Sequence record: LC597490.1
Length of the DNA stretch: 64,000 bases
Direction: 5' to 3' (one strand)
Of the stretch, positions 2,403 through 51,057 are shown piece after piece (within the stretch, counting starts at the first letter, position 1; every line of letters begins with the position of its first letter). The position numbers and the translations under genes were made by a program. Below the pieces are notes generated by a model. The model did no database searches, was not told the DNA's origin, and saw nothing but the letters and a program-made list of their open reading frames with translations.

Positions 2403-2705
2403 ATGAGTAAAAGAACAACAGATATTAAATTTCCTATTACTCATAAAGAGATAGGAAATGGCACAGTTGTATTTTATGCTTCTACTTATAGGAAAGATTG
2501 GGCAGGAAGCAATGAGCATCATCCAATTCCTAAATATCCAGAAAATGACCACTTATTAGAAGAAGGTATTATGGGCGCAAATAGGCAAAACAATTATCGA
2601 ACAGATAGTTGGAGGTTGAAAAAAATACAATGTAAATTAGTTGATTTAAACAATGAAATGAGTATTATGAAGTTTAAACAAGAAGGTGTTATCTATGAGG
2701 TTTAA
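2403..2705 (+). CDS. Hypothetical protein with C-terminal tag
   Basis: Ends N-EMSIMK-FKQE-GVIYEV. Confidence 0.7.
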   Translation: MSKRTTDIKFPITHKEIGNGTVVFYASTYRKDWAGSNEHHPIPKYPENDHLLEEGIMGANRQNNYRTDSWRLKKIQCKLVDLNNEMSIMKFKQEGVIYEV

Positions 2706-2973
2706 AGTAGGTGATGTCGTTGAAATTGTTGAAGGTAGTTTCTTTTACCAACAACAATTTTCATCTGGCGGTAAAAAGTTGAAAGGTATCATCGTAGATG
2801 TAAGCGGTCAAGGTGATTGGTACAATTCACATTATGATTATAGAGTACAATGGTGGATGGGGAATAGAAATCAAGGTAAATTCTTCTATAATGATATTCA
2901 TCTACAATTGGTTAATCAACATAATGAAAGTACACTTCTTTCTATGAAGAAGGAGGAAACATATGAGTTTTAA
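2695..2973 (+). CDS. Array A paralog 1 (SH3/KOW-like), C-tagged
   Basis: FKVGDVVEIVEGS..YDYRVQW..YNDIHL; ends N-ESTLLS-MKKE. Confidence 0.7.
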   Translation: MRFKVGDVVEIVEGSFFYQQQFSSGGKKLKGIIVDVSGQGDWYNSHYDYRVQWWMGNRNQGKFFYNDIHLQLVNQHNESTLLSMKKEETYEF

Positions 2974-3247
2974 TATAGGTGACAAAGTAGAAATTCGTAA
3001 AGGTAGTCAATATTTTGGTCAACAAATGCGTGGTATGAAGAAAATGGAAGGCATTGTTACAGATGTTTCAGGCCTAAATGAATGGGTAAGTACTAGCTTT
3101 AAATATAAAGTAAGTTGGATGTTAAACAATAAAGAAATGACTGCATATCTTTATAATGATAAAGATTTAAAACCACTCATTATTAGCAATCAAAAAGTAT
3201 TATCTAGTTTAAAACGAGACAATACCGATGATTGGAGTGTTATATGA
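2963..3247 (+). CDS. Array A paralog 2, C-tagged
   Basis: FNIGDKVEIRKGS..FKYKVSW..YNDKDL; ends N-QKVLSS-LKRD. Confidence 0.7.
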   Translation: MSFNIGDKVEIRKGSQYFGQQMRGMKKMEGIVTDVSGLNEWVSTSFKYKVSWMLNNKEMTAYLYNDKDLKPLIISNQKVLSSLKRDNTDDWSVI

Positions 3248-3531
3248 TGTTGCTTCCACTTGGTACAAAAGTAATTATCCGAGAAGGAACTCAGTTTAAA
3301 GGTCAAGATTCTTACTTTAAACATGGTTATAATGGCTCTAAAGAACAAGGTTATGGCATCATAAATCACTATATTAACATTGAAGATTTTTGTTATAGTG
3401 TTCTTTGGTATAAACAAAATGGTGAGAGATATGGCTCCAATAATTATCGTAGAAGAGATTTACAAGCTATCATTGGAAACAATGAAGAAGCGAAACTTCA
3501 ACTTAAAGTAGATGATGATATTCTAATTTAA
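3244..3531 (+). CDS. Array A paralog 3, C-tagged
   Basis: LPLGTKVIIREGT..YSVLW..YRRRDL; ends N-EEAKLQ-LKVD. Confidence 0.7.
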   Translation: MMLLPLGTKVIIREGTQFKGQDSYFKHGYNGSKEQGYGIINHYINIEDFCYSVLWYKQNGERYGSNNYRRRDLQAIIGNNEEAKLQLKVDDDILI

Positions 3532-3548
3532 GTGTAGGAGGAATTGAA

Positions 3549-3836
3549 ATGAGTAATGAATTGCTCCCAGTAGGTGCGAAAGTAACCTTATTACCTACAT
3601 CTGATTTTGCAGGTCAAGATTATTACAGAGAACATGGTGAAAGGGTTAAGGCACCATTCGGTATTATTGTTCAACAAGTTGGTCGTCGTAATGGCTTTGC
3701 TTACCACATTGATTGGTATACAAAAGATGGTAGGAAGTTTTATTCTGATGCTTATACTAGGCATTGTGTAAAAGCAGTTGTTGTTAACAATGATGATACA
3801 CTCTTATTATTTAAAAGTGATGAAATTAATATATAG
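3549..3836 (+). CDS. Array A paralog 4, C-tagged
   Basis: LPVGAKVTLLPTS..YHIDW; ends N-DDTLLL-FKSD. Confidence 0.7.
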   Translation: MSNELLPVGAKVTLLPTSDFAGQDYYREHGERVKAPFGIIVQQVGRRNGFAYHIDWYTKDGRKFYSDAYTRHCVKAVVVNNDDTLLLFKSDEINI

Positions 3837-3853
3837 AAAGGGGAGAAAAGAAG

Positions 3854-3982: not shown

Positions 3983-4414
3983 ATGTTGCCAGGATTTACT
4001 GGTGTATTGCATTATGAACAACAAGAAATTCCTTTTTATTTAAATCCGACCTTCAATGAAGATGCTGACGCTATTGAAGCATTAGAGCCAGGTGAATCAC
4101 TACTTCTTTTTTATGATAGTCATGAACAAAAAGACAAGGATTACCTAATTAGAACCATATTGGAGGAATTCAGTTATTCATTAGAAGATAAACTTTGTAA
4201 CTCTGAAATAAAGGAATTGATTGATAGGTTGAAAATAGATGATATAGGACCTACTCAACATTTCATAGATAAAGACTTAGTAGAGGTTCAAGTTCATGAA
4301 GAAGAAATAAAAATGCAAGATTGGGCTACTGGTGGATTCTTTAAAATAACAAATCCTGAGTATAACAATGAAAGTTATATGTACAAAATGAAATCGGAAT
4401 TAGAAACTAGGTGA
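3983..4414 (+). CDS. Hypothetical protein, C-tagged
   Basis: SD aggagg before ATG 3983; ends N-ESYMYK-MKSE-LETR. Confidence 0.7.
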   Translation: MLPGFTGVLHYEQQEIPFYLNPTFNEDADAIEALEPGESLLLFYDSHEQKDKDYLIRTILEEFSYSLEDKLCNSEIKELIDRLKIDDIGPTQHFIDKDLVEVQVHEEEIKMQDWATGGFFKITNPEYNNESYMYKMKSELETR

Positions 4415-12854: not shown

Positions 12855-12958
12855 TATTATCATAGATTTTAAGGAAAGCCATGTAATGGATGTAAGTTCA
12901 TAGGAACTTTATCATATAAAAAATAAAAAAATTGACAATTGAAAGGGAGTTATTAATT

Positions 12959-13810
12959 ATGCGTAAAGTAGTATATGGTTCAACAACAGTAGACATCGAG
13001 GACAACAACTTAACAGTGGAGGACATTCGTGAAGTAATGTCTGAAACATACCCTGAGTTAGCAAATGCAACACACACTGAGCGTGATGGTGTTATTGAGT
13101 TTAAGGTACAGGCGGGCACGAAAGGTGCTCTTCGTGTTGTTAAGTATGGTTCAACTACAATCGACATCGAAGATGATGCGTTAACTGTTAATGATATCCG
13201 TGAAGTTATGTCGGAAACTTACCCTGAATTGGCGAATGCATCTCATACACAAGAGGGTAACGTTATCGAGTTCAAGGTGCAAGCTGGTACAAAAGGAGCG
13301 CTCCGTATTGTAAAATACGGTTCGACTTCTATTGATATCGAGGACGATGCTTTAACAGTCAACGATATCCGTGAGGTAATGTCTGAGACTTACCCAGAGC
13401 TTGCTAACGCTTCTCATACGCAAGAAGGGAACGTTATTGAGTTTAAAGTCCAAGCAGGTACGAAAGGTGCTCTCCGTGTTGTAAAATACGGAAGCACTTC
13501 TATCGACATTGAGGATGATGCATTGACTGTAAATGACATCAGAGAGGTTATGTCAGAAACATATCCTGAGTTAGCAAACGCTTCTCATACTCAGGAAGGA
13601 AATGTCATCGAATTTAAAGTACAAGCTGGTACAAAGGGTGCTTTACGAGTAGTAAAATATGGTTCTACTACAATTGATATCGAAGACGACGCACTAACTG
13701 TTAACGATATTCGTGAAGTAATGTCAGAAACGTATCCAGAACTAGCAAATGCATCTCATACTCAAGAGGGCAATGTGATCGAATTTAAAGTGCAAGCAGG
13801 AACTAAAGGT
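12959..13810 (+). repeat. Five 171 nt coding repeats
   Basis: Units start at 12959, 13130, 13301, 13472, 13643. Confidence 0.95.
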
Positions 13811-13858
13811 GGTCTTGAGTTCTTCAAAGCTATTGCACCAAAATTAAGAAAGAAGTAA
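12959..13858 (+). CDS. Polyubiquitin-like precursor: five tandem Prok_Ub (PRTRC protein C-like) units plus 15 aa tail
   Basis: SD aaagggag, ATG 12959. Each 56 aa unit has YPEL and ends KVQAGTKG, as recalled for PRTRC protein C (YPEI...AVGTKG). Confidence 0.85.
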   Translation: MRKVVYGSTTVDIEDNNLTVEDIREVMSETYPELANATHTERDGVIEFKVQAGTKGALRVVKYGSTTIDIEDDALTVNDIREVMSETYPELANASHTQEGNVIEFKVQAGTKGALRIVKYGSTSIDIEDDALTVNDIREVMSETYPELANASHTQEGNVIEFKVQAGTKGALRVVKYGSTSIDIEDDALTVNDIREVMSETYPELANASHTQEGNVIEFKVQAGTKGALRVVKYGSTTIDIEDDALTVNDIREVMSETYPELANASHTQEGNVIEFKVQAGTKGGLEFFKAIAPKLRKK

Positions 13859-13935: not shown

Positions 13936-14319
13936 ATGGCTGAAGACAGAAGTATGCAAGAAGTATTAGATGACATCCTTAGTGTTGCAGAAGGTGAAGA
14001 AACTCCAGTACCAGCTGAAGCAGCTATTGAGCAAAATTCATGGGAAAGAGAAGGTTTTGGTGCATTAGAGGCATTTGTTTGTGAGAGATTAGAAGATTTA
14101 CCTCACCAACCGATTCTTAGTGCAGATATCAAAACAAAGGTTAATAGAATCATGTCTGCTGAAAAGGTATCTGATTTAGATGATTTATCGGTGTCTGCAT
14201 TAGAAGCAACTGTTGAGGAAATGAGACGTCCATTAAACGGTCATTTGAATCGTTTGGATGATTTTGCGCCTCGTGTAGCTCGTGCAATGCCAATTGAAAG
14301 AGAAAGTGACTTTATCTAA
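13936..14319 (+). CDS. Acidic hypothetical protein in Ubl cassette
   Basis: SD aaggagg; 127 aa. Confidence 0.7.
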   Translation: MAEDRSMQEVLDDILSVAEGEETPVPAEAAIEQNSWEREGFGALEAFVCERLEDLPHQPILSADIKTKVNRIMSAEKVSDLDDLSVSALEATVEEMRRPLNGHLNRLDDFAPRVARAMPIERESDFI

Positions 14320-14333: not shown

Positions 14334-15863
14334 TTGACTAATCTAACAGAATTAAGAAGTCGTGTATCACATGTAGTATCATCTAGAAGATTATTGTCTG
14401 ATGGTTTAATTAAGGACCATATGGCGATTCCAACAAACGTAGCTGAAGAAAAGAAAATTGTTCAAGACACAGTTTTTGAAGCAATTAAAAATACATTTAT
14501 TGGGTGCCGTATTAATCCCAATAAAAATGCATTCTCTGTTAAACTTGATGGTGCGATTAACGTTAAAGCACAAGAGTTATATGATTATATCCAAGAGCAT
14601 CCACATTGGAAATCATTTTTAGAATCTCAACATTCTAGTAAGTTACGTACAATATTAAACTTACAAAATGTGTATCAAGAAAGGAGAGAATTAAAATTTA
14701 AAAGAGAAGATGATGGACGTCGCTTTATTTATGTCCCGTTTGAACCACATGATATTCCGAGTTATCATGACCAAGGTTTATATCATATGCTTCAGTATTT
14801 GAAACAAAGTTTCGACAGAGAGAAAGCAGCATCTGTTATCTTTGATGAAGTAATGCAATTGATTGAAACTGAACGTCAACGTCGTATCGAAGAACGTAAT
14901 CGTTTAATGCAACGTATCGAAGCGAAGTACAAGGAAGATATCAAAGCAAGCTTGTTGAAACCAATTGGTACGATTCGAGGAGATGTTCGTGAGAAACTTA
15001 TCCAAGAACGTATGGTTAAATGGTGTAATGAGCAAGGTTTAGCGCCAGCGATTCCTCAAGAGCTTACATACCAGAACATTATTCCAGTTGGTACGGAAGT
15101 ATCAGTTGTTGTTAAGTCAGGTTCTCAAGAAGAAGGATGGTTTGCAGTTCCACGTTCTGGAGGATTTGAGATTCCTGAAGGCTTTGAACGTTTAATGGTT
15201 TATGATAATGTAACTCGTCACGATGCATTACATCAACGTTCACGTAGTGGTTCAGCTCCAATCGTAATCAATGAAGATACATTCACTGAGTTCGATATCA
15301 ATTACTGGAAGCACTTACTACCTGAAGAACATGCTCAGTATAAAGCAGGTTATGAGGCTGTAGTGGCTTCTGTAACAGCTGCTGAAGTTAAGATAGTACA
15401 AGACTTACTTGATGAGCAAAAACGTGAGGAAGAGGCACGTATTGAGCGTCAAAAGCAAGAGCTTGAACAGAAACGTGAAGAGTTAAGACGTCAACGTGAG
15501 CGTGAAGATGAAGAGTTGCGTCGTCTTGAAGCAACGTATGAAAGAGAAAATGAGCAGAAACGTCAAGAAAGAAAGCGTAGAAGCTTAGACGGTATTACTC
15601 GTCAATTACAAGAACAAGCTGAAACTCATACGGTAGAAGATGATGTATTAGATATCGTTGAATCTGATTACACAATCTTATACAATCCGTTTGGTGTAGA
15701 AAGTAAGTTCACGTTAGTACATGCAAGTGGTGAAGAAGAAAACTTTGCAAGTGAAGATGATTTAAAAGTACGTATCTTTGATGAATTAGATTTAGATGAG
15801 CACGAAGCTGTTGTGTATCATAAAATCAATCAAAGCCGTATCTACAAACAATTAACAAAATAA
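14334..15863 (+). CDS. Hypothetical protein with long charged coiled coil, in Ubl cassette
   Basis: TTG start with SD ggaggg; E/R/Q-rich helix near C-terminus. Confidence 0.75.
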   Translation: MTNLTELRSRVSHVVSSRRLLSDGLIKDHMAIPTNVAEEKKIVQDTVFEAIKNTFIGCRINPNKNAFSVKLDGAINVKAQELYDYIQEHPHWKSFLESQHSSKLRTILNLQNVYQERRELKFKREDDGRRFIYVPFEPHDIPSYHDQGLYHMLQYLKQSFDREKAASVIFDEVMQLIETERQRRIEERNRLMQRIEAKYKEDIKASLLKPIGTIRGDVREKLIQERMVKWCNEQGLAPAIPQELTYQNIIPVGTEVSVVVKSGSQEEGWFAVPRSGGFEIPEGFERLMVYDNVTRHDALHQRSRSGSAPIVINEDTFTEFDINYWKHLLPEEHAQYKAGYEAVVASVTAAEVKIVQDLLDEQKREEEARIERQKQELEQKREELRRQREREDEELRRLEATYERENEQKRQERKRRSLDGITRQLQEQAETHTVEDDVLDIVESDYTILYNPFGVESKFTLVHASGEEENFASEDDLKVRIFDELDLDEHEAVVYHKINQSRIYKQLTK

Positions 15864-15893: not shown

Positions 15894-16619
15894 ATGGCAA
15901 ACCGTCCAGATTCTATTAACATTGAGATTTTACAAGAGGGAGTTACAATCAAGACAACGAAAAATGGTGTAACAACTTTAAAGGAAACAAATCTTGAGCA
16001 GGTTCAACGTCAATTAACAAGCAATGAGCGTATTGAGACGCCGTTGCTTCCAAGTATTTGGGGTGTACAAAAGTTTGTTAAACGTGGTAATAAAGAGTTA
16101 TACGTTATTACGACTCCTCCAGGAATTCGTAAAGTACAGTACACTGGTGATGACCGTGGTGAGTATGAGATTCCTGTACCAGCTGCGATTTGGTTTGTAA
16201 CAGCACAAGAACGTTCTGGTGGCGGACGTCAATTGATTCATACAACAGTTTATGCAATTAAAAATCCTATTTTAACAGGTATTGAACAATTGTATCGTAT
16301 GCCATTTAGTAACTGTGATAACTCGTACATTTGCTGGGGAGATGAGAGTCCACAAATTTCATCACCAAAAAGTGTTCAATCTATCCCAGACCGTTTCTTC
16401 TCTATGCCATTTAACAGTGACTTAGGAAGCAATGCGTATCAACCAATTAAAGAAGTAGTGGATGGAAGAGAAATTAGTCACTTCCGTATCAATCACTTAT
16501 TCCGTTACTTAGATCGTAAATTGAAAGAGGATAAAGATTTCCGTTTCCCGAACAATCATTTAAATAGTTACGAGTCATTTAAGCGTGTACTTGACCACGA
16601 ACTTCGTCGTTTATCTTAA
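15894..16619 (+). CDS. Prokaryotic E2 family D (PRTRC protein B-like)
   Basis: TPPGIRKV..IPVPAAIW..VYAIK..LYRMPFSN...ICWG..RFFSMPFN; candidate catalytic Cys in ICWG. Confidence 0.75.
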   Translation: MANRPDSINIEILQEGVTIKTTKNGVTTLKETNLEQVQRQLTSNERIETPLLPSIWGVQKFVKRGNKELYVITTPPGIRKVQYTGDDRGEYEIPVPAAIWFVTAQERSGGGRQLIHTTVYAIKNPILTGIEQLYRMPFSNCDNSYICWGDESPQISSPKSVQSIPDRFFSMPFNSDLGSNAYQPIKEVVDGREISHFRINHLFRYLDRKLKEDKDFRFPNNHLNSYESFKRVLDHELRRLS

Positions 16620-16678: not shown

Positions 16679-18061
16679 ATGACAAAGGCAGCAGCAAAAG
16701 CAAACGGAATGGCAGCGCTAAGAGCGAAAATGGCAGGACAAACTATGGGATTCCACACTGGTCCTCAAACAGCTGAGGTTTATGCACAAAAACCAACAAA
16801 CATCGTTACAGCAGGTAATGGTGTTTTCCGTGTAATCCAAAAGGATATCGGTGCTTTCATTACGAAACTAGCTGATGGTAAGATTCCAGGTTTACCTGAA
16901 ATGCAAGAAGGAGTGGAATTAGCGATTCCAAAGATTCCTTACAAGTATTGGTTACAAGTATTATCATTCTATAAAGATGTAAATGCAAAAGATGGTACAG
17001 AAGCATCTGTTATCTTCTTCTGGAATACGAATAATGTTCAGATTCCAACTCATTATGACCCAACTCCTGCACAAGCAGCGAAGGGTGAGTTAGGGCCAGA
17101 AGTAAAAGGTTTAACGCAAGATGGTCAATTAATCATTTATTGTCCAGTACAAAAGAACTCTGGTAGTTTATCAGACTTTACGAAAGATTCATTTGTAGAT
17201 TGGTTACGTCTTAATACAGCTCAGTTATTAGAAACACATTCTCATAATACAATGGGTGCGTTCTGGTCAGGAACAGATGACAGCAATGAGAACTATCCAC
17301 AGTTCTACGGTGTTATGGGTAAAGTTTCAAGCCCACAACCTGAGTATCGTTTCCGTTATGCTTTAGGTAAAGAAAAGTTCGATTGTGAGTTATGGGAACT
17401 ATTCGAAAAACCTCAAGTAAAAATGACTGAAACAGTTATTGTTAACATCCCAGGTGTAGGTGAGTACAAAGATGAGCAAGAAGTGAAGAACTTAGACTTC
17501 AATGGTCCATGGCCGATGGTTGAATATCCAGATGATTGGATGGGTCAACATAGTAAGAGTGTATACACACCAACTTACACAACTCCGTACCAACGTAAAA
17601 CATATGGTGCAGCAGGAACTCAAGTTCACGGAGGAGCAGGTGGTGGTAACTTTCCCAGTCTCCACGGTTCAGAAGCCTGGGGAGACGGCTGGGGGGATTC
17701 AGGCTACTGGCCTGGCGTTTCTGGTCAATCTGGCCTTGGCATGGGTGCGGAAGTAATCGAAGGTGACTTCGGATACGGAGAAGGTACCAGGCAAGGGCAA
17801 GAATCGTTCGAAGAATCGTACAAAAAACTCTTACAAGAACCAGTCGCAGGGCAGGGGACGTGGACGTTCGCAAAAGCATGGGAAAAGAAAGTAAGTGAAG
17901 GTCAGCTTGAAACAGATGGAACAACTGTTGATTATGTAATCATGGAACCAACTGAAGCTGAAGAACGTGATGAAATTCATGCATTAATTGGTGAATTAAT
18001 TAACTTTGGTACGTATGCGACCATCGTTGATATTGCAAGAGATGAACACCTCGTAGAGTAG
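16679..18061 (+). CDS. JAB/MPN+ isopeptidase (PRTRC protein A-like) with long low-complexity C-terminal extension
   Basis: GNGVF; EASV (catalytic E); ETHSHNTMGAFWSGTDD (HxH...S..D). Confidence 0.85.
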   Translation: MTKAAAKANGMAALRAKMAGQTMGFHTGPQTAEVYAQKPTNIVTAGNGVFRVIQKDIGAFITKLADGKIPGLPEMQEGVELAIPKIPYKYWLQVLSFYKDVNAKDGTEASVIFFWNTNNVQIPTHYDPTPAQAAKGELGPEVKGLTQDGQLIIYCPVQKNSGSLSDFTKDSFVDWLRLNTAQLLETHSHNTMGAFWSGTDDSNENYPQFYGVMGKVSSPQPEYRFRYALGKEKFDCELWELFEKPQVKMTETVIVNIPGVGEYKDEQEVKNLDFNGPWPMVEYPDDWMGQHSKSVYTPTYTTPYQRKTYGAAGTQVHGGAGGGNFPSLHGSEAWGDGWGDSGYWPGVSGQSGLGMGAEVIEGDFGYGEGTRQGQESFEESYKKLLQEPVAGQGTWTFAKAWEKKVSEGQLETDGTTVDYVIMEPTEAEERDEIHALIGELINFGTYATIVDIARDEHLVE

Positions 18062-35972: not shown

Positions 35973-36226
35973 GAGACTACAAAGGTAAAGAAGTTATTAT
36001 TGGAGATAAACGAGCCAGCTTAAATTTCTATAAAAGTATTATTGGGAAAAAAGGTACAGTTACTGACCGTGCCACTCTAACAGGTTGGTTCGTGAATATT
36101 TCTCGTAGTGAAACTGTAGCTGTTTATGATGAATGGATTGTGCATGAAGATGACTTACTTGTTATTCCTAAAGAAAATGAAGAAACAATTTCTTCTATGA
36201 AACAAGAGGAAAATCCTTATGAGTAA
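35969..36226 (+). CDS. Array C paralog 2, C-tagged
   Basis: GKEVIIGDKRA..WIVHEDDL; ends N-EETISS-MKQE. Confidence 0.7.
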   Translation: MRDYKGKEVIIGDKRASLNFYKSIIGKKGTVTDRATLTGWFVNISRSETVAVYDEWIVHEDDLLVIPKENEETISSMKQEENPYE

Positions 36227-36449
36227 AAAACAAAAACCTAAATACTGTATTATTGGCGGAGCGAAAGCAGAGACTTATGGATACGAATATGTTGTAGGCA
36301 AGAAAGCTAGAATGTATTCAGTAGGGGATGAACATGTGCATGTGAAAGTTGAGAACCTTGGTTTCTGGTATATAGCAACAGAAGATGCTCTTTTTAATTT
36401 TAACAATAAAGAGTCTATCATTAATATGAAAAGAGAGGATGCATTGTGA
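36219..36449 (+). CDS. Array C paralog 3, C-tagged
   Basis: IIGGAKA..WYIATED; ends N-KESIIN-MKRE. Confidence 0.7.
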   Translation: MSKKQKPKYCIIGGAKAETYGYEYVVGKKARMYSVGDEHVHVKVENLGFWYIATEDALFNFNNKESIINMKREDAL

Positions 36450-36688
36450 AAAAAGGTGATATATTGGTTGTTGGTGATAAACGTGCAGCTAAATATGGAT
36501 ACTACAAAGCAGTGGGGTGTAGGGTTGTACTACACAAACGTCATACTGTATTCCATGAATTATGGGGTGTGAAATTAGAAAACAGTCGAGCACATATGTT
36601 TCCTAGTTATTTCATACATGAAGAGGACCTTCTTCCTATTCAAAATACAAGTTCTCTTATACGTTTAAAAGAGGAGGAAAATATATGA
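36446..36688 (+). CDS. Array C paralog 4, C-tagged
   Basis: GDILVVGDKRA..YFIHEEDL; ends N-TSSLIR-LKEE. Confidence 0.7.
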   Translation: MKKGDILVVGDKRAAKYGYYKAVGCRVVLHKRHTVFHELWGVKLENSRAHMFPSYFIHEEDLLPIQNTSSLIRLKEEENI

Positions 36689-36930
36689 AACGAGGAGATA
36701 GGAAGGTTGTTGGAAAGATATTCTCTAGAGATTTCAATTACACACCTTTAGAGGGTAAGGTTGTTCAAGTTTATAAACGTAATGAAACTGTTAGAGATAC
36801 TTGGTATGTACATCCAATTATGAAAAATGGATTGGTTTCTAAAAATGCATGGTATGTCCACATTAAAGACTTAATGGATATCACGAATGAAGGTACCATA
36901 AAAGTATTGAAAGGGGAGATAATGATATGA
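36685..36930 (+). CDS. Array C paralog 5, C-tagged
   Basis: GDRKVVG..WYVHIKDL; ends N-EGTIKV-LKGE. Confidence 0.7.
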   Translation: MKRGDRKVVGKIFSRDFNYTPLEGKVVQVYKRNETVRDTWYVHPIMKNGLVSKNAWYVHIKDLMDITNEGTIKVLKGEIMI

Positions 36931-37959: not shown

Positions 37960-38286
37960 ATGAGAAGAGCAATGATTGAATACAAAGGGGAAATAATAGA
38001 ACCCATTGCAATTGTATTTAGAAGAGGCATTACAAGAGAAGATAGGCATATCGCATTGGTTCATACACCAGGAGAATACTTTTGTCCTGTTACAATAGAA
38101 GCTATGTTTAGGTATGATAAAAAACAACCACATGTTTTATATGAATCTCCAAGATATATGAAAATATTATCACAGGATTTAGATGAAAATTATAGTTGGG
38201 TTCGTATCAACAAAGAAGATATCATAACAAGTAATGAATCTAATCAGAATGCTTCTTTATACATGAGAAAAGAGGAGGCACTATAA
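37960..38286 (+). CDS. Array D paralog 1, C-tagged
   Basis: EPIAIVFRR..IALVH; ends N-QNASLY-MRKE. Confidence 0.7.
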   Translation: MRRAMIEYKGEIIEPIAIVFRRGITREDRHIALVHTPGEYFCPVTIEAMFRYDKKQPHVLYESPRYMKILSQDLDENYSWVRINKEDIITSNESNQNASLYMRKEEAL

Positions 38287-38663
38287 TGAAGAAAGCATTT
38301 GCTCTAATTCCAGGTTTACTTCCAGAAGAAGAATTATTTGACGATGTAAATTGTGCATATGAAGACTACAACAATCCAATCACTGTAGAAGTATTTGCTA
38401 TTGTCTCTCGTGATGATGAAAGATTGATTGCATTACATAGACATGAAGAAGCAGATTACTGGCCCATGAGCCTTGAACAACTTGCAGCCACAGATAGTGA
38501 AGGTATGGTTGAAATCTTTATATCTAGTCATTTTCATCAAATTAGTGAACCAGACTTTAAAGAAAACTATGTATGGTCTACGATTGTACATGATAATTAC
38601 AAAATAAGAGATGCATCGAATCAAGACAATTTAGCTAGTATGAAAGGGGAGATTATGATATGA
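38286..38663 (+). CDS. Array D paralog 2, C-tagged
   Basis: VEVFAIVSR..IALH; ends N-QDNLAS-MKGE. Confidence 0.7.
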   Translation: MKKAFALIPGLLPEEELFDDVNCAYEDYNNPITVEVFAIVSRDDERLIALHRHEEADYWPMSLEQLAATDSEGMVEIFISSHFHQISEPDFKENYVWSTIVHDNYKIRDASNQDNLASMKGEIMI

Positions 38664-38989
38664 GAAAAGCCTATGCAACAATAGAAAAACGGGGAAGAGA
38701 CCCTAAGGAAGTGGAAATAGTTGCGCTTATGATACGTAGAGATGGAAGAACAATCGCATTGTATCATGAAGCAAACACAGCTTTTCATCCCAAAAGCGTA
38801 GAAGCTATACAAGAAAAGGATACGCCTAACTATAAAATGCTTTTTCTTTCAGAAAAGTATTACCAAATTACTAAAGAGGATTTACGTGTTCATTATAGGT
38901 GGGATGATGTCTTGAATGAGAATTATAGAATTGAAGCGAACACGAATCGGGATGCTTCTAAGTCACTGAAAGGAGAAGAAGTCATATGA
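38660..38989 (+). CDS. Array D paralog 3, C-tagged
   Basis: VEIVALMIR..IALYH; ends N-RDASKS-LKGE. Confidence 0.7.
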   Translation: MRKAYATIEKRGRDPKEVEIVALMIRRDGRTIALYHEANTAFHPKSVEAIQEKDTPNYKMLFLSEKYYQITKEDLRVHYRWDDVLNENYRIEANTNRDASKSLKGEEVI

Positions 38990-39312
38990 GAAAGGCATTT
39001 GCAAAAGTAAAACTTAACGGTAAAGTTGTACATTCAGAAGCAATTGTTATTCTTACCCGTAAAAGTGGTAGAGTCATTGCATTATGTTATGATAAAGGCT
39101 CTGAATTCTATCCACTTTCTGTTCAAGGTATGTTGGCTGATGACAATGGAGAAGTAAAAATCCATTTTAAATCTCCAAAGTATGATAAGTTAGACCACAA
39201 TAGTTTTCGAAGAGACTATATATGGCGTGAAATTATTGATTGCGAATATGCAATCGAAGAAGAGAACAATGGTTTAGCTGTTCGTGCAATGAAAGGTGAA
39301 GAAGTAATATGA
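38986..39312 (+). CDS. Array D paralog 4, C-tagged
   Basis: SEAIVILTR..IALCY; ends N-GLAVRA-MKGE. Confidence 0.7.
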   Translation: MRKAFAKVKLNGKVVHSEAIVILTRKSGRVIALCYDKGSEFYPLSVQGMLADDNGEVKIHFKSPKYDKLDHNSFRRDYIWREIIDCEYAIEEENNGLAVRAMKGEEVI

Positions 39313-39632
39313 AAGCATTTGCCCAACCATTAACACGTAACTCTGAAGTAGAAGTTCTAGCTGTTATAAAAAGAAAAGAGGATGATATAGAGTATGTGTT
39401 ACATAGACATAATAGCTTTCATCCTCATCACCCAAGAAGTGTAGAAGAAATAGCAGACAACAAAAGAAATACCGTAGAAGTCGTATTCGTATCAGAAGAA
39501 TACAAAAAGATTTCTCGTGATGAAATTAGAAGGAAATATACATGGACTCAAATACAACCAGGTTCATGTCGTTATGTTCAGCAAACGAATGCCTGGTCTG
39601 TTTTGGACATGAAACCAGAGGTGACAATATGA
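39309..39632 (+). CDS. Array D paralog 5, C-tagged
   Basis: VEVLAVIKR; ends N-AWSVLD-MKPE. Confidence 0.7.
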   Translation: MKAFAQPLTRNSEVEVLAVIKRKEDDIEYVLHRHNSFHPHHPRSVEEIADNKRNTVEVVFVSEEYKKISRDEIRRKYTWTQIQPGSCRYVQQTNAWSVLDMKPEVTI

Positions 39633-39961
39633 AACAAATACGTATTAATAATCATAAATATGATGTATATGCTATTGTGTCACAAGGGAAAAAGATGATT
39701 GAAGAAAATATGATGATGGCTATTTTAATACACAAAGATGGCGCAGACCTTTCTCCTATGACACCATTTGAAATAGCTGCTTATTACAAAGGAGAAATAC
39801 TTTATATTGACTCTGAACTAAAGAGAAGAAGATTGGATAAGCACGGCACTCGATTTAACCGTGAAGACTTCATGTGGATTACTCGCACATTGAAACTATC
39901 TGATATCGAACCAACTAACAACAACTTTATGTCTTCTTTAAAGAGTGAACCTGTATTATGA
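39629..39961 (+). CDS. Array D paralog 6, C-tagged
   Basis: ATG 39629; YDVYAIV; ends N-NNFMSS-LKSE. Confidence 0.7.
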   Translation: MKQIRINNHKYDVYAIVSQGKKMIEENMMMAILIHKDGADLSPMTPFEIAAYYKGEILYIDSELKRRRLDKHGTRFNREDFMWITRTLKLSDIEPTNNNFMSSLKSEPVL

Positions 39962-40254
39962 GAACAGTTTATCTCTCATCACATCGTAAAGAGTTTAAAG
40001 TATATGCGATTATAGAAGAAGAACACACTACAGATTTCTTAATTAAAGAAGAGTATCAAAGCGACAACAATCCATATCATCTAGCAGAATTTTTTGATGC
40101 GGAAGTCACTTATGTAGATAAGGAATTTCATAAATATGAAGGAACAAAAGACGCATGTTATGGTTTCGTATGGATAGAAGAAGACCACCATTGGCATTAC
40201 ACAGGTAGAAATTCCGATACAGTATATGCTTTTAAAAAGGAGGATGTAATATGA
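39958..40254 (+). CDS. Array D paralog 7, C-tagged
   Basis: FKVYAIIEE..NPYH..F..YVDK; ends N-SDTVYA-FKKE. Confidence 0.7.
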   Translation: MRTVYLSSHRKEFKVYAIIEEEHTTDFLIKEEYQSDNNPYHLAEFFDAEVTYVDKEFHKYEGTKDACYGFVWIEEDHHWHYTGRNSDTVYAFKKEDVI

Positions 40255-40556
40255 GGAAGGTACGTATTCACTATACAAATGAAGTAATTGAGGCTTATGC
40301 CATCGTAGAAGAATCCAATCAGTTGAACTTTCTTATTCGAGCATTCCCATCAGAATATAGTACACCTATGAATCCTTATCATATGGAACAGTTCTTTGGT
40401 GGACATATTCATTATGTAGATAAATCACTTGAAAAATATAAAGATACTGAACATGCTTGTGATGGTTATAAATGGATAATCATGGAGACGGAATGGGATT
40501 ACTTCGATAATAATGAAAATACAGTAGCAACATTAAAAGAAGAAATAGCATATTAA
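40251..40556 (+). CDS. Array D paralog 8, C-tagged
   Basis: IEAYAIVEE..NPYH..FF..YVDK; ends N-ENTVAT-LKEE. Confidence 0.7.
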   Translation: MRKVRIHYTNEVIEAYAIVEESNQLNFLIRAFPSEYSTPMNPYHMEQFFGGHIHYVDKSLEKYKDTEHACDGYKWIIMETEWDYFDNNENTVATLKEEIAY

Positions 40557-40559
40557 AAA

Positions 40560-41579: not shown

Positions 41580-41966
41580 ATGGTAAAACTTTTATCACCT
41601 GTAGGTACAGAAGTTGAAGTAGTATGTGTCATATCAGAAGTACATAAGGTACGAGAAAATGTACCTATACGGGACAGAGGAGTGATGGTACGAAGAGAAA
41701 TAGAAAGGGAGTATAAGATATTTAAAGCTCTTGTAAAAGGGTATGGAGGCGGTTGTCACCCAGCTCTATTGAAAGGTGATTTTAAAATCGAATACACATC
41801 CGATAATTTTGATTCACTATCCTTAATACACATCAAGAATAACTATGAGTGGATGAATTTTCGTACAACAAATCCATTAAAGTTTATAAGAAAGAATAAT
41901 AATAGCATTAAGGATTGGAAGCAAGAAGACGAAAGAATGTGGAAGGAGGACTGGATGTATGATTAA
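41580..41966 (+). CDS. Array E (D-like) paralog, C-tagged
   Basis: ATG 41580; VEVVCVI; N-NNSIKD-WKQE. Confidence 0.65.
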   Translation: MVKLLSPVGTEVEVVCVISEVHKVRENVPIRDRGVMVRREIEREYKIFKALVKGYGGGCHPALLKGDFKIEYTSDNFDSLSLIHIKNNYEWMNFRTTNPLKFIRKNNNSIKDWKQEDERMWKEDWMYD

Positions 41967-42288
41967 AGTACGAGACAGGGATAGACATGGTAGACCAATT
42001 ACCAGAGAGGTGTATGGCGTTGCTCGTATAAAAGGATGGGATACCCAAGGATGGGTGTATCATATTCTAATGCCATACGATAAAGATTATTTAACAGGTG
42101 GTGTTCCTGTAGTTAAATCACTTGGTTTTGAACTTATTTATTTAGATGACAGTATCTCAAGAACATCCAAAGAATTGGAAGGTCTTATTTGGAATCACTA
42201 TGGATCGGATAATCCAATTGATAAACAAATTATAATAACAAATAAATCATCTTTAATGAAGTTTAAATCAGAGGATAATTTAGAATGA
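41959..42288 (+). CDS. Array E paralog, C-tagged
   Basis: REVYGVA..NPID; ends N-KSSLMK-FKSE. Confidence 0.7.
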   Translation: MIKVRDRDRHGRPITREVYGVARIKGWDTQGWVYHILMPYDKDYLTGGVPVVKSLGFELIYLDDSISRTSKELEGLIWNHYGSDNPIDKQIIITNKSSLMKFKSEDNLE

Positions 42289-42301: not shown

Positions 42302-42625
42302 ATGATAAGAATTGAAAATTCAAAAGGTAGTGTATTCGAAGTGTATGGTGTAATAAAAACAAATGGTGTCGTGCCAGCTTATGCAACTTTACAAAAGAAA
42401 CGAACCAAGAAAAACGTTGGAGCAGCTTCTTCTTTTGAAAGAGTATTAGGATTAGGTGATACGATTCTATATAAGGATGAATCTATGGTTCCAAATGAAG
42501 AAGGTTATTATGATGGCTTCATGTGGACTTATTTTTCTGCAACACATAATCCAATGGATAGGGTTGTACTAGATACTAATATTGCAACGACACGCTTTAT
42601 GAAACAAGACATAGCTTGCGATTAG
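42302..42625 (+). CDS. Array E paralog, C-tagged
   Basis: FEVYGVI..LYKD..NPMD; ends N-IATTRF-MKQD. Confidence 0.7.
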   Translation: MIRIENSKGSVFEVYGVIKTNGVVPAYATLQKKRTKKNVGAASSFERVLGLGDTILYKDESMVPNEEGYYDGFMWTYFSATHNPMDRVVLDTNIATTRFMKQDIACD

Positions 42626-42635: not shown

Positions 42636-42935
42636 ATGAAAAGAATAAGAAGCCCTAAAAACAAATTAGTATATGATACTTACGGCGTCATATTAACTCC
42701 ACACGATATCTATATGATTTTAATAGAAGATGATGATGGCGGCGCAGTTTCATTTCAAGAAGCAGAAAGATTAAATGCAACCGTTCTTTATAAAGATGAC
42801 TTCTTGGAGTCACGTCCAGACCATATAGAAAGAAACTATAGATGGAAAGGATTTGGCGAAAAGAACCCACTTGATTATGTAATTGAAAACAATGGATTAG
42901 GTGTTTCTTCTATGAAAAAAGAGTCTCCTTTGTAG
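42636..42935 (+). CDS. Array E paralog, C-tagged
   Basis: YDTYGVI..LYKD..NPLD; ends N-GLGVSS-MKKE. Confidence 0.7.
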   Translation: MKRIRSPKNKLVYDTYGVILTPHDIYMILIEDDDGGAVSFQEAERLNATVLYKDDFLESRPDHIERNYRWKGFGEKNPLDYVIENNGLGVSSMKKESPL

Positions 42936-48708: not shown

Positions 48709-48957
48709 ATGGCAATCGAAGTATTCAAGTATACAAAACCAAATTGTGGACCATGTGTATTAGTAGGTAACTACTTAAATGAACATGATGTAAAAAACAT
48801 CGAACGTGATGTATATGAGTTCACTGAAGAGTATCAGAAACTAGGTGTATTTGGTACACCAGTAGTAGCTGCATTTAAAGATGGAGAACAAGTATTTCTA
48901 TCTGTTGGATTTAAAGAAGCTGAATTAGAAAAGCTTGTAGAATTAGTAAACGAATAG
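48709..48957 (+). CDS. NrdH/thioredoxin-like redoxin
   Basis: CGPC, GTPVV. Confidence 0.85.
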   Translation: MAIEVFKYTKPNCGPCVLVGNYLNEHDVKNIERDVYEFTEEYQKLGVFGTPVVAAFKDGEQVFLSVGFKEAELEKLVELVNE

Positions 48958-48970
48958 GGGGTCATGTGAC

Positions 48971-49660
48971 ATGACAGTATGGGCGATACTATTTATTCTA
49001 TCATTCTTCCTTTCTATGTATTTAATGATTGGCGGTTTATCCAAAGATCAAAAAGTAGCTGATGCAAAGAAGAAACTTCGTCGAGCTGAAGAAGCTCATA
49101 AGAAAGAAATTGAAGAATTAAAAGCACAACATGCAAAACAAATCAAAGACCGTGATGACATTACTATTGAAGTAGTGGACAAAGCTGCTGATAAAATCCG
49201 TAGTTTGGGAGCTATTATCGACAAGCGAGATGGAAAAGGAACTGCTCGTGAAATTGTAACAGAACGTACTCATTACAATGAACAACGTACAGACATTTCA
49301 TATAGAGTATTGTATGACCATCTTGCAAAGCAATTAGATAAGAAGCCAGAACAACCAAAGCCAGTTCAAATGAAGAAACACGTAACACCATTTGGTGGTT
49401 GGAGTGGAGGAAGCGGTGGTTCTTCATCGTCTTCGTCATCATCAAGTTCTAGCCCTAGACGTTCTGGAAGTAGTTCATCTTCTCGTTCTTCTAGCTCAAG
49501 CGATTACTCAAGTAGTTATGATTATGGTTCTTCATATAGTTCGTATGATAGCGGTAGTAGCTCTTCTTATAGCTCAGGTGGTAGCTGTGGTTCTAGCTCA
49601 AGCTCTTATTCAGATTCAAGTTCTAGCTCAGATTCAGGTGGTTACGGTGGCTGTGATTGA
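48971..49660 (+). CDS. Membrane-anchored coiled-coil protein with Ser/Gly/Tyr-rich tail
   Basis: N-terminal TM; about 85 aa poly-Ser tail. Confidence 0.75.
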   Translation: MTVWAILFILSFFLSMYLMIGGLSKDQKVADAKKKLRRAEEAHKKEIEELKAQHAKQIKDRDDITIEVVDKAADKIRSLGAIIDKRDGKGTAREIVTERTHYNEQRTDISYRVLYDHLAKQLDKKPEQPKPVQMKKHVTPFGGWSGGSGGSSSSSSSSSSSPRRSGSSSSSRSSSSSDYSSSYDYGSSYSSYDSGSSSSYSSGGSCGSSSSSYSDSSSSSDSGGYGGCD

Positions 49661-49937
49661 TAGGGGGTATCTTACCCCCTCCCAGCTTTACGGGCATCCA
49701 AGAGACACTATCACAATGCGTGAATATGCAGATAACATCCAACCTGTAATAGTGGATTATCAATACGAACCATATGATAGGATTCTAACTGAAGAGATGA
49801 AAAAATATATGGAGCAACTTGAAAAACAACTGTATAAGAGTATTATGGATAGTTATGATGATTCTTTGAAGAACATCATTAAACCTTCTAACGAGAAGAC
49901 AGTTAAACGTATGAAACAGGAGGATGAGGTTTCATGA
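49653..49937 (+). CDS. Array F ORF 1, C-tagged (start uncertain: GTG 49653 or ATG 49716)
   Basis: Ends N-EKTVKR-MKQE. Confidence 0.5.
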   Translation: MIDRGYLTPSQLYGHPRDTITMREYADNIQPVIVDYQYEPYDRILTEEMKKYMEQLEKQLYKSIMDSYDDSLKNIIKPSNEKTVKRMKQEDEVS

Positions 49938-50455
49938 CGACATTTAGAGGTGCCGATGTAATTGCTACATTTAATGACCAAGTTATTGGAAGATTAAATC
50001 CTATTAGCTATTCCGTTAGTAGAGAAAGTGCTCCTAGATATTACATGGGAACTCCAGGACACAATAGTTTCTCTAGAGGATTTACTTCAGAAGTTACATT
50101 ATCAAATGTAATAGCTGATGAGTCACAAGAGCAAACTAGAAGAAACTTAATCGAACATTTAGATTTAAGTGATGATTTTACATTTTCTCAATTATCTAAT
50201 GCAGTACGTTTGTCATATGGTTATGCTAGAGGAATGGGTAGAGGATTTCCTGGGAACTTTAGACTTCAGGTAGATGAAGTTGATTACTCTATGTTGTATC
50301 CTGCTACTTTCAGTGTGATTAAGGTTAGAGCATTGGATTTTAAGAAGTTTATTCGTCCGATTGAAATGGATGAAAGTAAGTTTACCTATGTGAATCCAAA
50401 TAACTCTTTTAGAAGTTGGAAACTGAATCGAGAGGAGGAAGTTTACTATGACTAA
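49934..50455 (+). CDS. Array F ORF 2: tail-tube-like N-terminus, C-tagged
   Basis: TFRGADVIATFNDQVIGRLNPISYSVSRESAPRYYMG..SFSRG matches recalled FSGADIVATF..VIGEL..ITYSV.REKAP.Y.MG..SFSRG; ends N-SFRSWK-LNRE. Confidence 0.6.
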   Translation: MTTFRGADVIATFNDQVIGRLNPISYSVSRESAPRYYMGTPGHNSFSRGFTSEVTLSNVIADESQEQTRRNLIEHLDLSDDFTFSQLSNAVRLSYGYARGMGRGFPGNFRLQVDEVDYSMLYPATFSVIKVRALDFKKFIRPIEMDESKFTYVNPNNSFRSWKLNREEEVYYD

Positions 50456-50759
50456 TGAGTATGCGAAACTATCCGCCCAGAGAATTACTGAAGAAGCAGT
50501 TCGATTAATGAAAGAAGCTTGTTCTCCATACGTTGGGCAGCCAGTTAATCAAACTAAACAAAGTGTAGCAGATGCTATGGCTCGTCATTTGCAAAAGTTC
50601 TTTTCAGATGATTGGAAAATAGAAGTTGCTGAAGATGGTATGGGTACATTTACATACTTAAAACCAGTAACAGTAACAACAGCAACACTTGATATGCGTC
50701 ATGTTTTAAACAACAATTTCTTTCTAGATAAAATGAAAGAAGAAACTGCATATGATTAA
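50448..50759 (+). CDS. Array F ORF 3: tail-sheath C-terminal-like fragment, C-tagged
   Basis: LSAQRITEEAVRLMKEACSPYVGQPVN resembles recalled sheath LS..RI..EAV......PFIGEPN; ends N-NFFLDK-MKEE. Confidence 0.5.
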   Translation: MTNEYAKLSAQRITEEAVRLMKEACSPYVGQPVNQTKQSVADAMARHLQKFFSDDWKIEVAEDGMGTFTYLKPVTVTTATLDMRHVLNNNFFLDKMKEETAYD

Positions 50760-51057
50760 TTACTCAAATACAATTAAACAAGAGCTACAAACGATATCTG
50801 CTACATTTGAAAGTGAAGGAGATAGAGAATCAACTGTTCAAGAAATGAATGGGATTATTCAAAATAGATTATCTATGATGACATTGGGTACCACTATACA
50901 TGAAATAAAATGTGAACAAGGTAATGATGGCAAGTTTCATCTCAAGATAAAATTTGCACCTCCCCCTTTAGACAAAATTTATGTAAACATGAATCTAACA
51001 CCCAATAGGAATCAATTTAATATCCATTCGTGGAACAAAGAAGCCTCTTACGATTAA
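50752..51057 (+). CDS. Array F ORF 4: possible sheath extreme C-terminal fragment, C-tagged
   Basis: L.MM..G..I...HLKIKFAP..LDKIYVNMNL; ends N-QFNIHS-WNKE. Confidence 0.45.
   Translation: MINYSNTIKQELQTISATFESEGDRESTVQEMNGIIQNRLSMMTLGTTIHEIKCEQGNDGKFHLKIKFAPPPLDKIYVNMNLTPNRNQFNIHSWNKEASYD

Follow-up and report, generated by a model that had tools for sequence, protein, structure and literature searches.

Operons combining tandem ubiquitin-like (Ubl) repeats with E1 and JAB proteins were predicted in prokaryotes by Iyer et al. in 2006 (PMC1779556), who speculated that uncharacterized, operon-specific proteins recognize targets. A six-gene cassette of this kind is present in Bacillus phage vB_BceM_WH1 (LC597490.1), a 229.8 kb myovirus of B. 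cereus, and many small proteins of the phage end in a common C-terminal tag, the subject of this analysis. We analyzed the last 64 kb of the record (64,000 nucleotides, record positions 165830-229829; here called the window, to which coordinates refer unless another locus is named). The preliminary description of this sequence knew of no description of the tag. Likewise, our literature search found no description of the tag or of WH1, and the tag lies outside every Pfam, PHROG, NCBIfam and PADLOC model.

The cassette (Table 1) is of the PRTRC type: a Ubl (PRTRC_C), a ThiF-type E1 and a JAB-like PRTRC_A protein are encoded in one operon, with matches shared with the described Ub-like operons (PMC1779556) and the PRTRC models of NCBIfam. 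PRTRC B, D, E and F and a ParB-related gene were not detected: the 127-, 509- and 241-residue proteins had no NCBIfam match, and the search for ParB did not extend to the rest of the genome. In contrast to the PRTRC set, these three proteins belong to no family. The WH1 system also differs from the described Ub-like and PRTRC systems in its set of tagged, putative clients; none have been described for those systems.

A protein tail is handled by E1 and JAB proteins in type II CBASS (cyclic-oligonucleotide-based antiphage signaling system), in which the tail of the CD-NTase is used by the E1-E2 protein Cap2 and trimmed by the JAB protein Cap3 (PMC10097602). The likeness lies in the disordered C-terminal tail of a protein that is not itself a Ubl, in an E1/JAB-type system and in adjacent genes. 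CBASS has one client, whose terminal residue is activated (PMC10097602), whereas WH1 would have ~50, whose motif is internal, stopping 3-5 residues short of ends that vary and lack a terminal Gly or Ala, and its cassette has its own Ubl.

Variable bodies with a constant C-terminal docking element that serves a ubiquitin-type machine are also found in F-box and SOCS-box adaptors and in poxvirus ankyrin-PRANC proteins; these too are large, fast-evolving, lineage-expanded families that occur in viruses as well. The docking elements of these families are folded helical domains of 40-50 residues that bind Skp1 or Elongin BC. The WH1 tag, unlike these, is a disordered peptide of ~15 residues (predicted local distance difference test, pLDDT, below 50), has no sequence similarity to them, occurs in a bacterial host and would serve a presumed PRTRC-type Ubl machine.

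Encapsulin cargo-loading peptides and T4 capsid-targeting sequences are short flexible terminal peptides on unrelated proteins that address one receptor surface, that of an HK97-fold shell or a scaffold. Like encapsulin cargo peptides, the tag is C-terminal, disordered and found on unrelated proteins, but it has its own consensus and flanks a Ubl cassette rather than an HK97-fold shell gene. The T4-type capsid targeting sequence is an N-terminal peptide on proteins packaged into the head, whereas the tag is C-terminal and its genes lie in non-structural + strand operons. Unlike either system, the tag is absent from the related phage KLEB27-3 despite a related virion module. Finally, the SUMO consensus psi-K-x-[DE] is echoed in the Phi-K-x-[ED] of WH1-type tags (Phi, hydrophobic), but the Lys of the tag is conserved neither within nor across phage lineages, and the motif reaches 8 residues upstream to an invariant Asn.

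The C-terminal tag and the proteins that carry it

Exactly 35 + strand open reading frames (ORFs) of the window end in the tag. We scanned mechanically with the regular expression N.{6}[FLMW][KRN].[ED], requiring a match to end at most 12 residues from the stop, and recovered the same 35 ORFs, with the same stops, that the preliminary description had listed. Its residue counts (K in 29, N in 4 and R in 2) and its 3-12 residues between motif and stop were reproduced. On the - strand there were 0 C-terminal matches in 154 ORFs, and internal matches numbered 3 in 22,195 residues of + strand ORFs. From the genome-wide internal rate of ~8e-5 per position, ~0.15 C-terminal matches would be expected, compared to 35 observed. 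Eleven more tagged genes lie directly upstream of the window (gp141-gp180) and gp014 and gp028 are tagged as well, for a total of ~48 of the 300 WH1 genes. Bacillus phage Edson, the sole close sequenced relative of WH1 among 50,697 phage records (terminases 98% identical), has 51 tagged ORFs.

The motif as first described was correct but too short. Aligning 98 WH1 and Edson tags on the Asn gave the consensus [NST]-N-[ENKQ]-x-[TAS]-[VLI]-x-x-[LMF]-K-x-E-[ED]-x-[ILYV], with 0-3 further residues before the stop, a tag of ~15 residues. The hydrophobic preference at N+4 reported earlier was evident (V, L or I in 70 of the 98), and the residue after Phi was K in 79, N in 10 and R in 9. Beyond the motif, the 3-5 remaining residues differ from protein to protein, and D, E, S or R is common at the terminus (...TAYD, ...EVS, ...LETR). 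As had been remarked, no enzyme is tagged. A position-specific scoring matrix trained on the Edson tags alone and applied to WH1 scored 31 of the 35 window tags at 10 bits or more and all 35 at 6 bits or more. Control strands, most structural regions and KLEB27-3 gave no tags, and the sole extra match of the matrix elsewhere in the WH1 genome was the tagged gp028. Two 137-residue ORFs, 23965-24378 (...NGYSLKEEVKYD) and 33100-33513 (...NNTRGMKSEEVLY), were considered as short forms, that is, tags minus three residues between Asn and Phi-K-x-E; the rate of such ends was not above that in controls and the candidates were rejected.

The tagged genes have fast-evolving bodies with a frozen tail. 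We defined ortholog pairs as reciprocal best hits over all ORFs of WH1 and Edson. There were 139 pairs, 34 tagged in both phages and 105 untagged in both, with 0 discordant; the conservation in orthologs that the preliminary description had proposed to check thus held in every pair. Tagged genes without a counterpart numbered 7 in Edson and 2 in WH1. The tagged bodies were on average 55% identical between the two phages (range 27-90%), and the N and E of the tag were among the only invariant columns within families.

The bodies belong to many families. They formed 23 BLAST clusters; profile comparison joined families C and G, and I and J, and weakly linked B with E and F. Foldseek against BFVD indicated one fold for B, E and probably F, with matches to WH1's own paralogs only. 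At least 6 superfamilies and ~12 singletons are left. The earlier count of at least five dissimilar families therefore stands, but the separateness of B/E/F, of C/G and of I/J does not. None of 47 tagged proteins had a Pfam match, and their PHROG matches were to families without known function, apart from weak N-terminal matches to structural PHROGs. Homologs of families A, B and C were not found beyond Edson among the 50,697 records, a search of IMG/VR with one family-B member gave nothing useful, and the family A profile was too divergent for a pattern search.

In AlphaFold2 (AF2) models the tag is a flexible tail. The family B member 38986..39312 had a mean pLDDT of 84, with the body at ~90, residues 97-108 below 50 and a helix at 97-102. 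The family A member 25769..26083 had a mean of 73, with tag residues 92-94, 96-98 and 100-104 below 50 and a short helix at 92-98. Both bodies were modeled confidently, with different topologies, and the tag was unpacked in both; a fold search of the PDB found no match for either model. The Asn-capped amphipathic helix suggested earlier is not endorsed, because the helical hydrophobic moment of the tags (0.244) was not above that of shuffled tags (0.259), and the AF2 helix is short and of low confidence.

The tag is separable from the body. The SH3-like body (2695-3836) is related to the Mind-bomb and UBE2O SH3 domains via multi-repeat homologs and has 41 relatives among 1.84 billion representative proteins. 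Many of the single-domain relatives end right after the last strand (...DLEL...) and are untagged. Others carry the WH1-type tag or the variant N-x-E-A-x-x-L-L-x-[KR]-E-[WF]-COOH. The same body therefore exists in both states, and this family, together with the AF2 tails, bears out the view that the tag is a modular C-terminal element on unrelated bodies.

The motif is selected as a peptide. A by-product of Shine-Dalgarno (SD) sequences and translational coupling, a DNA repeat or an RNA element could also place similar codons at gene ends. K-x-E is commonly AAA GGN GAG, which doubles as the SD of the overlapping next gene, and coupled ends are enriched in GAG and in G-rich codons (Glu codons GAG 32, GAA 17; G fraction at the K-x-E codons 0.45). 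However, tagged ends were coupled to a downstream start in 48 cases and uncoupled in 47 (58 and 48 when the WH1-like locus L010 is included), and uncoupled ends keep K-x-E in A-rich, background-like codons (GAA 29, GAG 8; G fraction 0.28). Phi-K-x-E occurred at tag distance in just 3 of 60 untagged coupled ends. The invariant Asn and the hydrophobic positions are encoded 10-30 nt 5' to any SD; the Phi position uses ten different codons, and N, K and E also use synonymous codons. Close paralogs resembled one another over short junction stretches, but no further DNA repeat family was present, and Rfam gave no match at the tags. The SD-matched comparison proposed earlier thus showed the motif to be equally common with and without an overlapping SD, and the tag is kept, as had been reported, where the next gene has its own SD or where there is no adjacent downstream gene. 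Because uncoupled ends keep the motif in background-like codons, we conclude that the tag is a selected peptide, dual-coded with the SD at overlaps, and that the SD shapes codon choice, not amino acids. An origin at the nucleic-acid level is largely refuted and extremely unlikely. Apart from this, the tags of WH1 and Edson showed a codon-pair bias: an Asn that precedes the invariant Asn was AAC 25 times and AAT 6 times, and the invariant Asn itself was AAT 74 times and AAC 23 times (background, 60% AAT).

Tag flavours beside the cassette in other phages

A search of IMG/VR and metagenomes with an E1 profile gave 50 cassette loci. Three further metagenomic jumbo-phage lineages each had a uniform tag flavour of their own, always beside the same six-gene cassette. 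We call the WH1/Edson type lineage 1; L010 and L029 are further WH1-like phages with standard tags. Lineage 2 includes L014 and L016, lineage 3 is L025, and lineage 4 is L030 plus L031, whose overlap is 99.7% identical. Among the other labels, L001-L004 are the remaining WH1 genome, L005-L006 the Edson accessory region and L008 KLEB27-3, the nearest cultured relative outside the WH1/Edson type (terminase 58% and E1 46% identical).

Lineage 2 comprises the metagenomic contigs that encode the variant-tagged relatives of the SH3-like proteins, some of them from jumbo phages as large as 264 kb. Here 7-9 small genes carry [SN]-N-x-[EDG]-A-x-x-L-L-x-K-E-[WFY] precisely at the C-terminus. The layout there is tandem Ubl, small protein, 567-591-residue protein, 252-residue protein, JAB, ThiF E1, tagged gene, NT5C and tagged array, and the cassette comprises the same six genes as window positions 12932-18988. 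Edson, L029 and lineage 2 have a tagged gene immediately after E1; in WH1 and in lineages 3 and 4 it stands one to three genes further on. The lineage-2 K-E-W is nearly always AAG GAG TGG followed by a stop, 1 nt and ATG, and the one uncoupled gene keeps N-N-M-E-A-K-H-L-L but has no K-E-W. This part of the lineage-2 tag is probably explained by the SD, and counts in favour of the nucleic-acid explanation discussed above. In lineage 3 (a 251 kb contig), NNEESLVFLQDLELEV-type tags occur on 8 of 25 small ORFs, with the consensus N-N-[ESD]-x-Phi-x-x-Phi-L-x-[DE]. In lineage 4, eight genes in a row end in N-K-x-A-x-x-x-L-L-[ED]. Conservation across lineages is limited to the Asn, a small amino acid at +3, a hydrophobic one at +7 and an acidic one near +10. 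A lineage-agnostic framework detector flagged 20-75% of the small ORFs in most loci with tags, compared to a background of 0-5%; scores were lower for short loci that lie at an array edge.

The Lys is not among the positions conserved across lineages, and this bears on whether the tag might be an acceptor site at which the phage Ubl is conjugated onto the Lys. The resemblance of Phi-K-x-[ED], present in 79 of the 98 lineage-1 tags, to the SUMO consensus would fit such a role, as would the adjacent Ubl/E1/JAB cassette and the co-variation of its 509-residue protein with the tag (below). However, N or R replaces the Lys in 19 of the 98, the basic residue is shifted to +9 or absent in lineages 2 and 4 (LLEQEW, LLEEEW, LLEGNQ), and Lys is rare in lineage 3. 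The acceptor reading fails because the Lys is not conserved, and we consider it quite improbable.

The tag might also have no common partner, being the last remnant of one ancient family or an element for self-association or folding, with the link to the cassette due to ancestry or linkage. The genes do form tandem paralog arrays, profile and fold searches merge B/E/F, C/G and I/J, and the N and E of the tag are among the sole invariant columns within families, all of which speak for this reading. However, families A and B differ in predicted topology and neither packs the tag against its body, and SH3-like homologs elsewhere end without a tag. Moreover, a functionless remnant would not stay invariant while bodies drop to 27-55% identity, nor would it shift in concert to one flavour per lineage. 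We give this explanation little credence.

The presence of a cassette does not predict tags. KLEB27-3 has the cassette and no tag of any flavour, and the same holds for L027, L033-L038 and more distant cassettes; a rule that the tag goes with the Ubl cassette was therefore rejected. A possible further, diverged flavour, N-x6-L-x-R-W-x-D, was seen on two genes of L032. In KLEB27-3, proteins at ~23632-23940 and 30954-31283 share the C-terminus ...PIEAF[IM]LEDIVID; these are probably simple paralogs with no relation to the tag.

Which cassette protein tracks the tag

Among the cassette components, only the 509-residue protein, one of the candidate hubs in the preliminary description, is conserved in step with the tag. 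For E1, JAB and the 241-residue protein, KLEB27-3 is as close to the tag-bearing lineages as these are among themselves. The 241-residue protein has 37-43% identity within the crown clade (WH1, lineages 2 and 3, KLEB27-3) and 24-27% to the outgroup L027, regardless of the tag. In contrast, the 509-residue ('big') protein scored 190-214 bits among tag-bearing lineages and 32-57 bits to KLEB27-3 or L027. A hidden Markov model (HMM) of the big protein built from lineages 1-3 scored 456 bits for the independent lineage 4, compared to 50 for KLEB27-3, 47 for L027 and 113 for L032, and had no match in ~15 other tag-less cassette loci. All four tag-bearing lineages were thus at 456 bits or more, and tag-less or degenerate lineages were at 113 bits or less or had no match. 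Specificity to the tag-bearing lineages was highest in a block around WH1 residues 290-345; residues 1-345 contain the block RSRxGxAPIV...F[DN]xx[YF]WxHxLPE. A search of metagenome contigs with the big-protein profile gave nothing useful.

Tag and big protein also appear to have been lost together. Trees of single genes and of the concatenated genes placed KLEB27-3 within the tag-bearing lineages, on a branch of ordinary length for E1, JAB and the 241-residue protein and 2-2.6x longer for the big protein. A 21-taxon E1 tree placed the tag-bearing lineages, KLEB27-3 and L032 in one crown clade (74% support), with L032 sister to the WH1 group (100% support). Since KLEB27-3 and L032 are nested, there were at least two occasions on which the tag degenerated along with the tag-type big protein. 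The tag is thus connected to the 509-residue protein by phyletic co-occurrence as well as by correlated loss. The 127-residue protein followed a weaker trend, its similarity being detectable mainly among tag-bearing lineages; whatever the lineage, and with or without tags, its homologs end in [DS]-[ID]-D-[FY]-I-COOH, and the rest is barely alignable.

Based on these results, we favour the reading that the tag is a docking peptide with a single co-evolving receptor, which is probably the 509-residue cassette protein, and we put the probability of this reading at roughly 45%. A flexible C-terminal tail of ~15 residues on a large, fast-turnover repertoire of small proteins would be a short linear recognition motif. 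From one flavour per genome and a different flavour per lineage we infer a single co-evolving receptor. A tail that is uniform within a genome, lineage-specific, flexible on unrelated folds and lost with one protein would be a docking motif read by that protein or by something tightly linked to it. The tagged proteins would then be clients of the PRTRC-type Ubl cassette, most likely interchangeable specificity modules (adaptors) or substrates brought to the Ubl machinery, and the biochemical outcome may be conjugation, recruitment or turnover. Both the physical binding and the identity of the receptor are predicted from sequence comparisons.

Several points weigh against the 509-residue protein as receptor or limit the comparisons behind it. 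The correlation is based on 2-3 evolutionary events in ~6 lineages of the crown clade, support is weak (25-75%) at several tree nodes, and most of the metagenomic loci are partial contigs. We designed the lineage-agnostic framework detector with the variants already known, although its background was measured at 0-5%. AF2 worked from shallow alignments of 7-8 sequences. The cassette does not need tagged clients, as KLEB27-3 has retained all of it and has no tag. Most tagged operons of WH1 are 5-35 kb from the cassette. The reader of the tag could equally be a host protein or a different phage protein, for example the 127-residue cassette protein, the AAA ATPase gp183 or the ClpP gp034.

The last of these touches on a different role, that of a degron marking early proteins for timed destruction by an AAA+ protease, either the ClpP-like gp034 with a host unfoldase or FtsH modulated by the SPFH protein at 20038-21111. 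A strictly C-terminal, disordered tail on products of non-structural operons would suit a degron, WH1 encodes a ClpP homolog (CLP_protease, 4.7e-23), and the SPFH/Band 7 gene comes just after the first tagged gene following E1. Known terminal degrons of ClpXP and FtsH are non-polar, however, and the extreme C-termini of the tagged proteins are heterogeneous and often charged, with no conserved non-polar end. The phage ClpP matches models of head-maturation ClpP-related proteins about as well as those of housekeeping ClpP, and a degron would not explain the link to the big cassette protein. We regard a degron as unlikely.

Even less likely is a signal for virion targeting or ejection, which would load the small proteins into the capsid, or a prohead-protease site. 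A short disordered terminal peptide on unrelated, cargo-like proteins fits such logic, Glu-containing motifs are typical of prohead-protease sites and the tag contains Glu, and one tagged protein has an N-terminal match to a 'major head protein' PHROG. On the other hand, the tagged operons lie in a non-structural + strand region away from the - strand morphogenesis module, KLEB27-3 has no tags at all with a terminase 58% identical, and the tag tracks a protein of the Ubl cassette, not a structural gene. The capsid or compartment targeting peptide proposed in the preliminary description thus found no support, and we consider targeting to the virion very unlikely.

If the docking reading is extended, the system might be a phage Ubl conjugation machine aimed by ~50 fast-evolving adaptors, which would dock through the tag to the 509-residue protein and modify or neutralize host factors such as defence proteins. 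It would be the equivalent, in a bacterial virus, of the F-box or PRANC families of substrate adaptors. This extension is doubtful, although we would place it above a degron.

Features of the region and implications

Tagged genes of the window lie in arrays, and the features are listed in Table 1. Terminators at 25319-25341, 37897-37926 and 40558-40579 bound arrays, which are therefore discrete operons. Scans for sigma-70 promoters showed no enrichment.

Table 1. Cassette genes and tagged ORFs of the window, in order of position.
Feature	Coordinates	Strand	Length (aa)	Tail	Remarks
Tagged, singleton	2403..2705	+	100	NNEMSIMKFKQEGVIYEV	
Tagged, SH3-like (Mind-bomb/UBE2O-SH3-type)	2695..2973	+	92	HNESTLLSMKKEETYEF	phrog_11307; remote homologs with and without tag
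Tagged, SH3-like	2963..3247	+	94	SNQKVLSSLKRDNTDDWSVI	SD of next gene 3' of motif
Tagged, SH3-like	3244..3531	+	95	NNEEAKLQLKVDDDILI	own SD for next gene
Tagged, SH3-like	3549..3836	+	95	NNDDTLLLFKSDEINI	
Tagged, singleton	3983..4414	+	143	NNESYMYKMKSELETR	no coupled downstream gene
Cassette gene 1, tandem Ubl repeats	12932..13858	+	308		Pfam Prok_Ub 1.9e-27, 5 stretches; NCBIfam PRTRC_C 5.1e-21
Cassette gene 2	13936..14319	+	127		C-terminus ...ESDFI
Cassette gene 3, 'big' protein, candidate tag receptor	14334..15863	+	509		
Cassette gene 4	15894..16619	+	241		
Cassette gene 5, JAB/PRTRC_A-like	16679..18061	+	460		Prok-JAB 0.0029; PRTRC_A 3.3e-8 (below cut-off)
Cassette gene 6, ThiF-type E1	18131..18988	+	285		ThiF 1.5e-11; PRTRC_ThiF 2e-29 (below curated cut-off)
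Tagged, first downstream of E1 (after NADAR)	19517..19951	+	144	ENEAHVKKLNKETPFD	
Tagged, family A	24371..24742	+	123	NNNYGLKQFKSENDLLL	separate SD downstream
Tagged, family A, first of operon	25401..25769	+	122	KNEYTFHKLREEEGI	preceded by terminator 25319-25341
Tagged, family A	25769..26083	+	104		AF2 target
Tagged, family A	26096..26401	+	101	TNKISVSFFKQEELY	AAA CAA GAA; own SD for next gene
Tagged, family A	26416..26715	+	99	NNEGAVTDLKTEVLFD	separate SD
Tagged, family A	26728..27036	+	102	NNHQASLFMNEEPAI	separate SD
Tagged, family A	27049..27360	+	103	QNNEAVFKFKSETEVW	
Tagged, family D	35715..35972	+	85	NNEESISHMKEELGI	
Tagged, family D	35969..36226	+	85	ENEETISSMKQEENPYE	
Tagged, family D-like	36219..36449	+	76	NNKESIINMKREDAL	
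Tagged, family D	36446..36688	+	80	QNTSSLIRLKEEENI	
Tagged, family D	36685..36930	+	81	TNEGTIKVLKGEIMI	
Tagged, family B, operon start	37960..38286	+	108	SNQNASLYMRKEEAL	preceded by terminator 37897-37926
Tagged, family B	38286..38663	+	125	SNQDNLASMKGEIMI	AAA GGG GAG is SD of next gene
Tagged, family B	38660..38989	+	109	TNRDASKSLKGEEVI	
Tagged, family B	38986..39312	+	108		AF2 target
Tagged, family B	39309..39632	+	107	TNAWSVLDMKPEVTI	
Tagged, family E	39629..39961	+	110	TNNNFMSSLKSEPVL	external homolog P0006 also tagged
Tagged, family E	39958..40254	+	98	RNSDTVYAFKKEDVI	
Tagged, family E, operon end	40251..40556	+	101	NNENTVATLKEEIAY	followed by bidirectional terminator 40558-40579; no downstream gene
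Tagged, family F	41580..41966	+	128	KNNNSIKDWKQEDERMWKEDWMYD	long 12-aa tail
Tagged, family F-like	41959..42288	+	109	TNKSSLMKFKSEDNLE	separate SD
Tagged, family F	42302..42625	+	107	TNIATTRFMKQDIACD	
Tagged, family F, array end	42636..42935	+	99	NNGLGVSSMKKESPL	no adjacent downstream gene
Tagged, singleton	49653..49937	+	94	SNEKTVKRMKQEDEVS	
Tagged, singleton	49934..50455	+	173	NNSFRSWKLNREEEVYYD	N-terminal 49 aa match phrog_9206
Tagged, singleton	50448..50759	+	103	NNNFFLDKMKEETAYD	
Tagged, singleton	50752..51057	+	101	RNQFNIHSWNKEASYD	

Two proteins of the last array have weak N-terminal similarity to structural PHROGs, 49934-50455 over 49 aa to a major head protein (4.6e-8) and 50448-50759 to a tail sheath (0.002). 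A DUF5065 protein (1.9e-51) at 37384-37887 adjoins a tagged operon; in L032 (4630-5671), two cassette-internal proteins have a near-identical C-terminus, ...HLKSDFFTINK. The NADAR-domain gene at 19017-19490 (1e-52; PADLOC PDC-M42C, 3.8e-46) lies between E1 and the first tagged gene; Edson and L029 have a tagged 147-residue gene in its place.

The Ubl gene of the cassette is polyubiquitin-like, with about five tandem Prok_Ub/PRTRC_C repeats that end in ...AGTKG(G). The number of repeats varies among loci: the L027 protein has 126 residues (perhaps two repeats), single Ubls have 62-104 residues (L036, L038), and the longest version has 417. Single-Ubl versions end in ...ATKGL or ...GEKGLN, which suggests processing after Gly. 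PADLOC gave just weak or non-specific matches for the Ubl and E1, a strong one for the neighbouring NADAR gene, and nothing for the 127-, 509- and 241-residue proteins or JAB. The 509-residue protein also had no match in Pfam or the PDB, and a sequence search of the PDB with the 127-residue protein gave nothing useful. The lineage-2 big protein (L016 1695-3398; L014 1908-3683) ends in ...EEDLPF or ...DDDDDNSDLPF, resembling the C-terminal tip of bacterial single-stranded DNA-binding proteins; that of WH1 (51747-52355) ends in ...DDDLPF.

Two replication and packaging genes of WH1 appear to be interrupted. The gene for DNA polymerase III alpha is in three ORFs (28524-29879, 30604-31524 and 31928-32722), and each of the gaps has a full-length, sub-threshold match to a group I intron (29806-30419, 28.7 bits, E 9e-5; and 31504-31828, 32.2 bits, E 8e-6). 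Residues 44-466 of the 974-residue terminase large subunit (L003 29312-32236, - strand) match intein-containing helicase and RecA genes of other phages, and its match to the 0305phi8-36 terminase is limited to residues 458-905, which suggests an intein or homing-endonuclease insert.

Constant tags on variable bodies are known from F-box, SOCS-box and PRANC proteins, cargo peptides and degrons; a phage version would be new, and possibly coupled to a Ubl. One sixth of WH1 genes are ORFans with a common label, and its reader would place ~50 proteins in one pathway. The identity of that reader would give a first handle on the function of phage-borne, and by extension plasmid-borne and integrative and conjugative element-borne, PRTRC-type cassettes, which were predicted in 2006. 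If the tagged proteins are adaptors, they would be a virus-encoded substrate-targeting library in bacteria, and the tag could be reused as a portable recruitment peptide. Even with another receptor, the tag would be a clean natural example of a short linear motif co-evolving with its reader across phage lineages.

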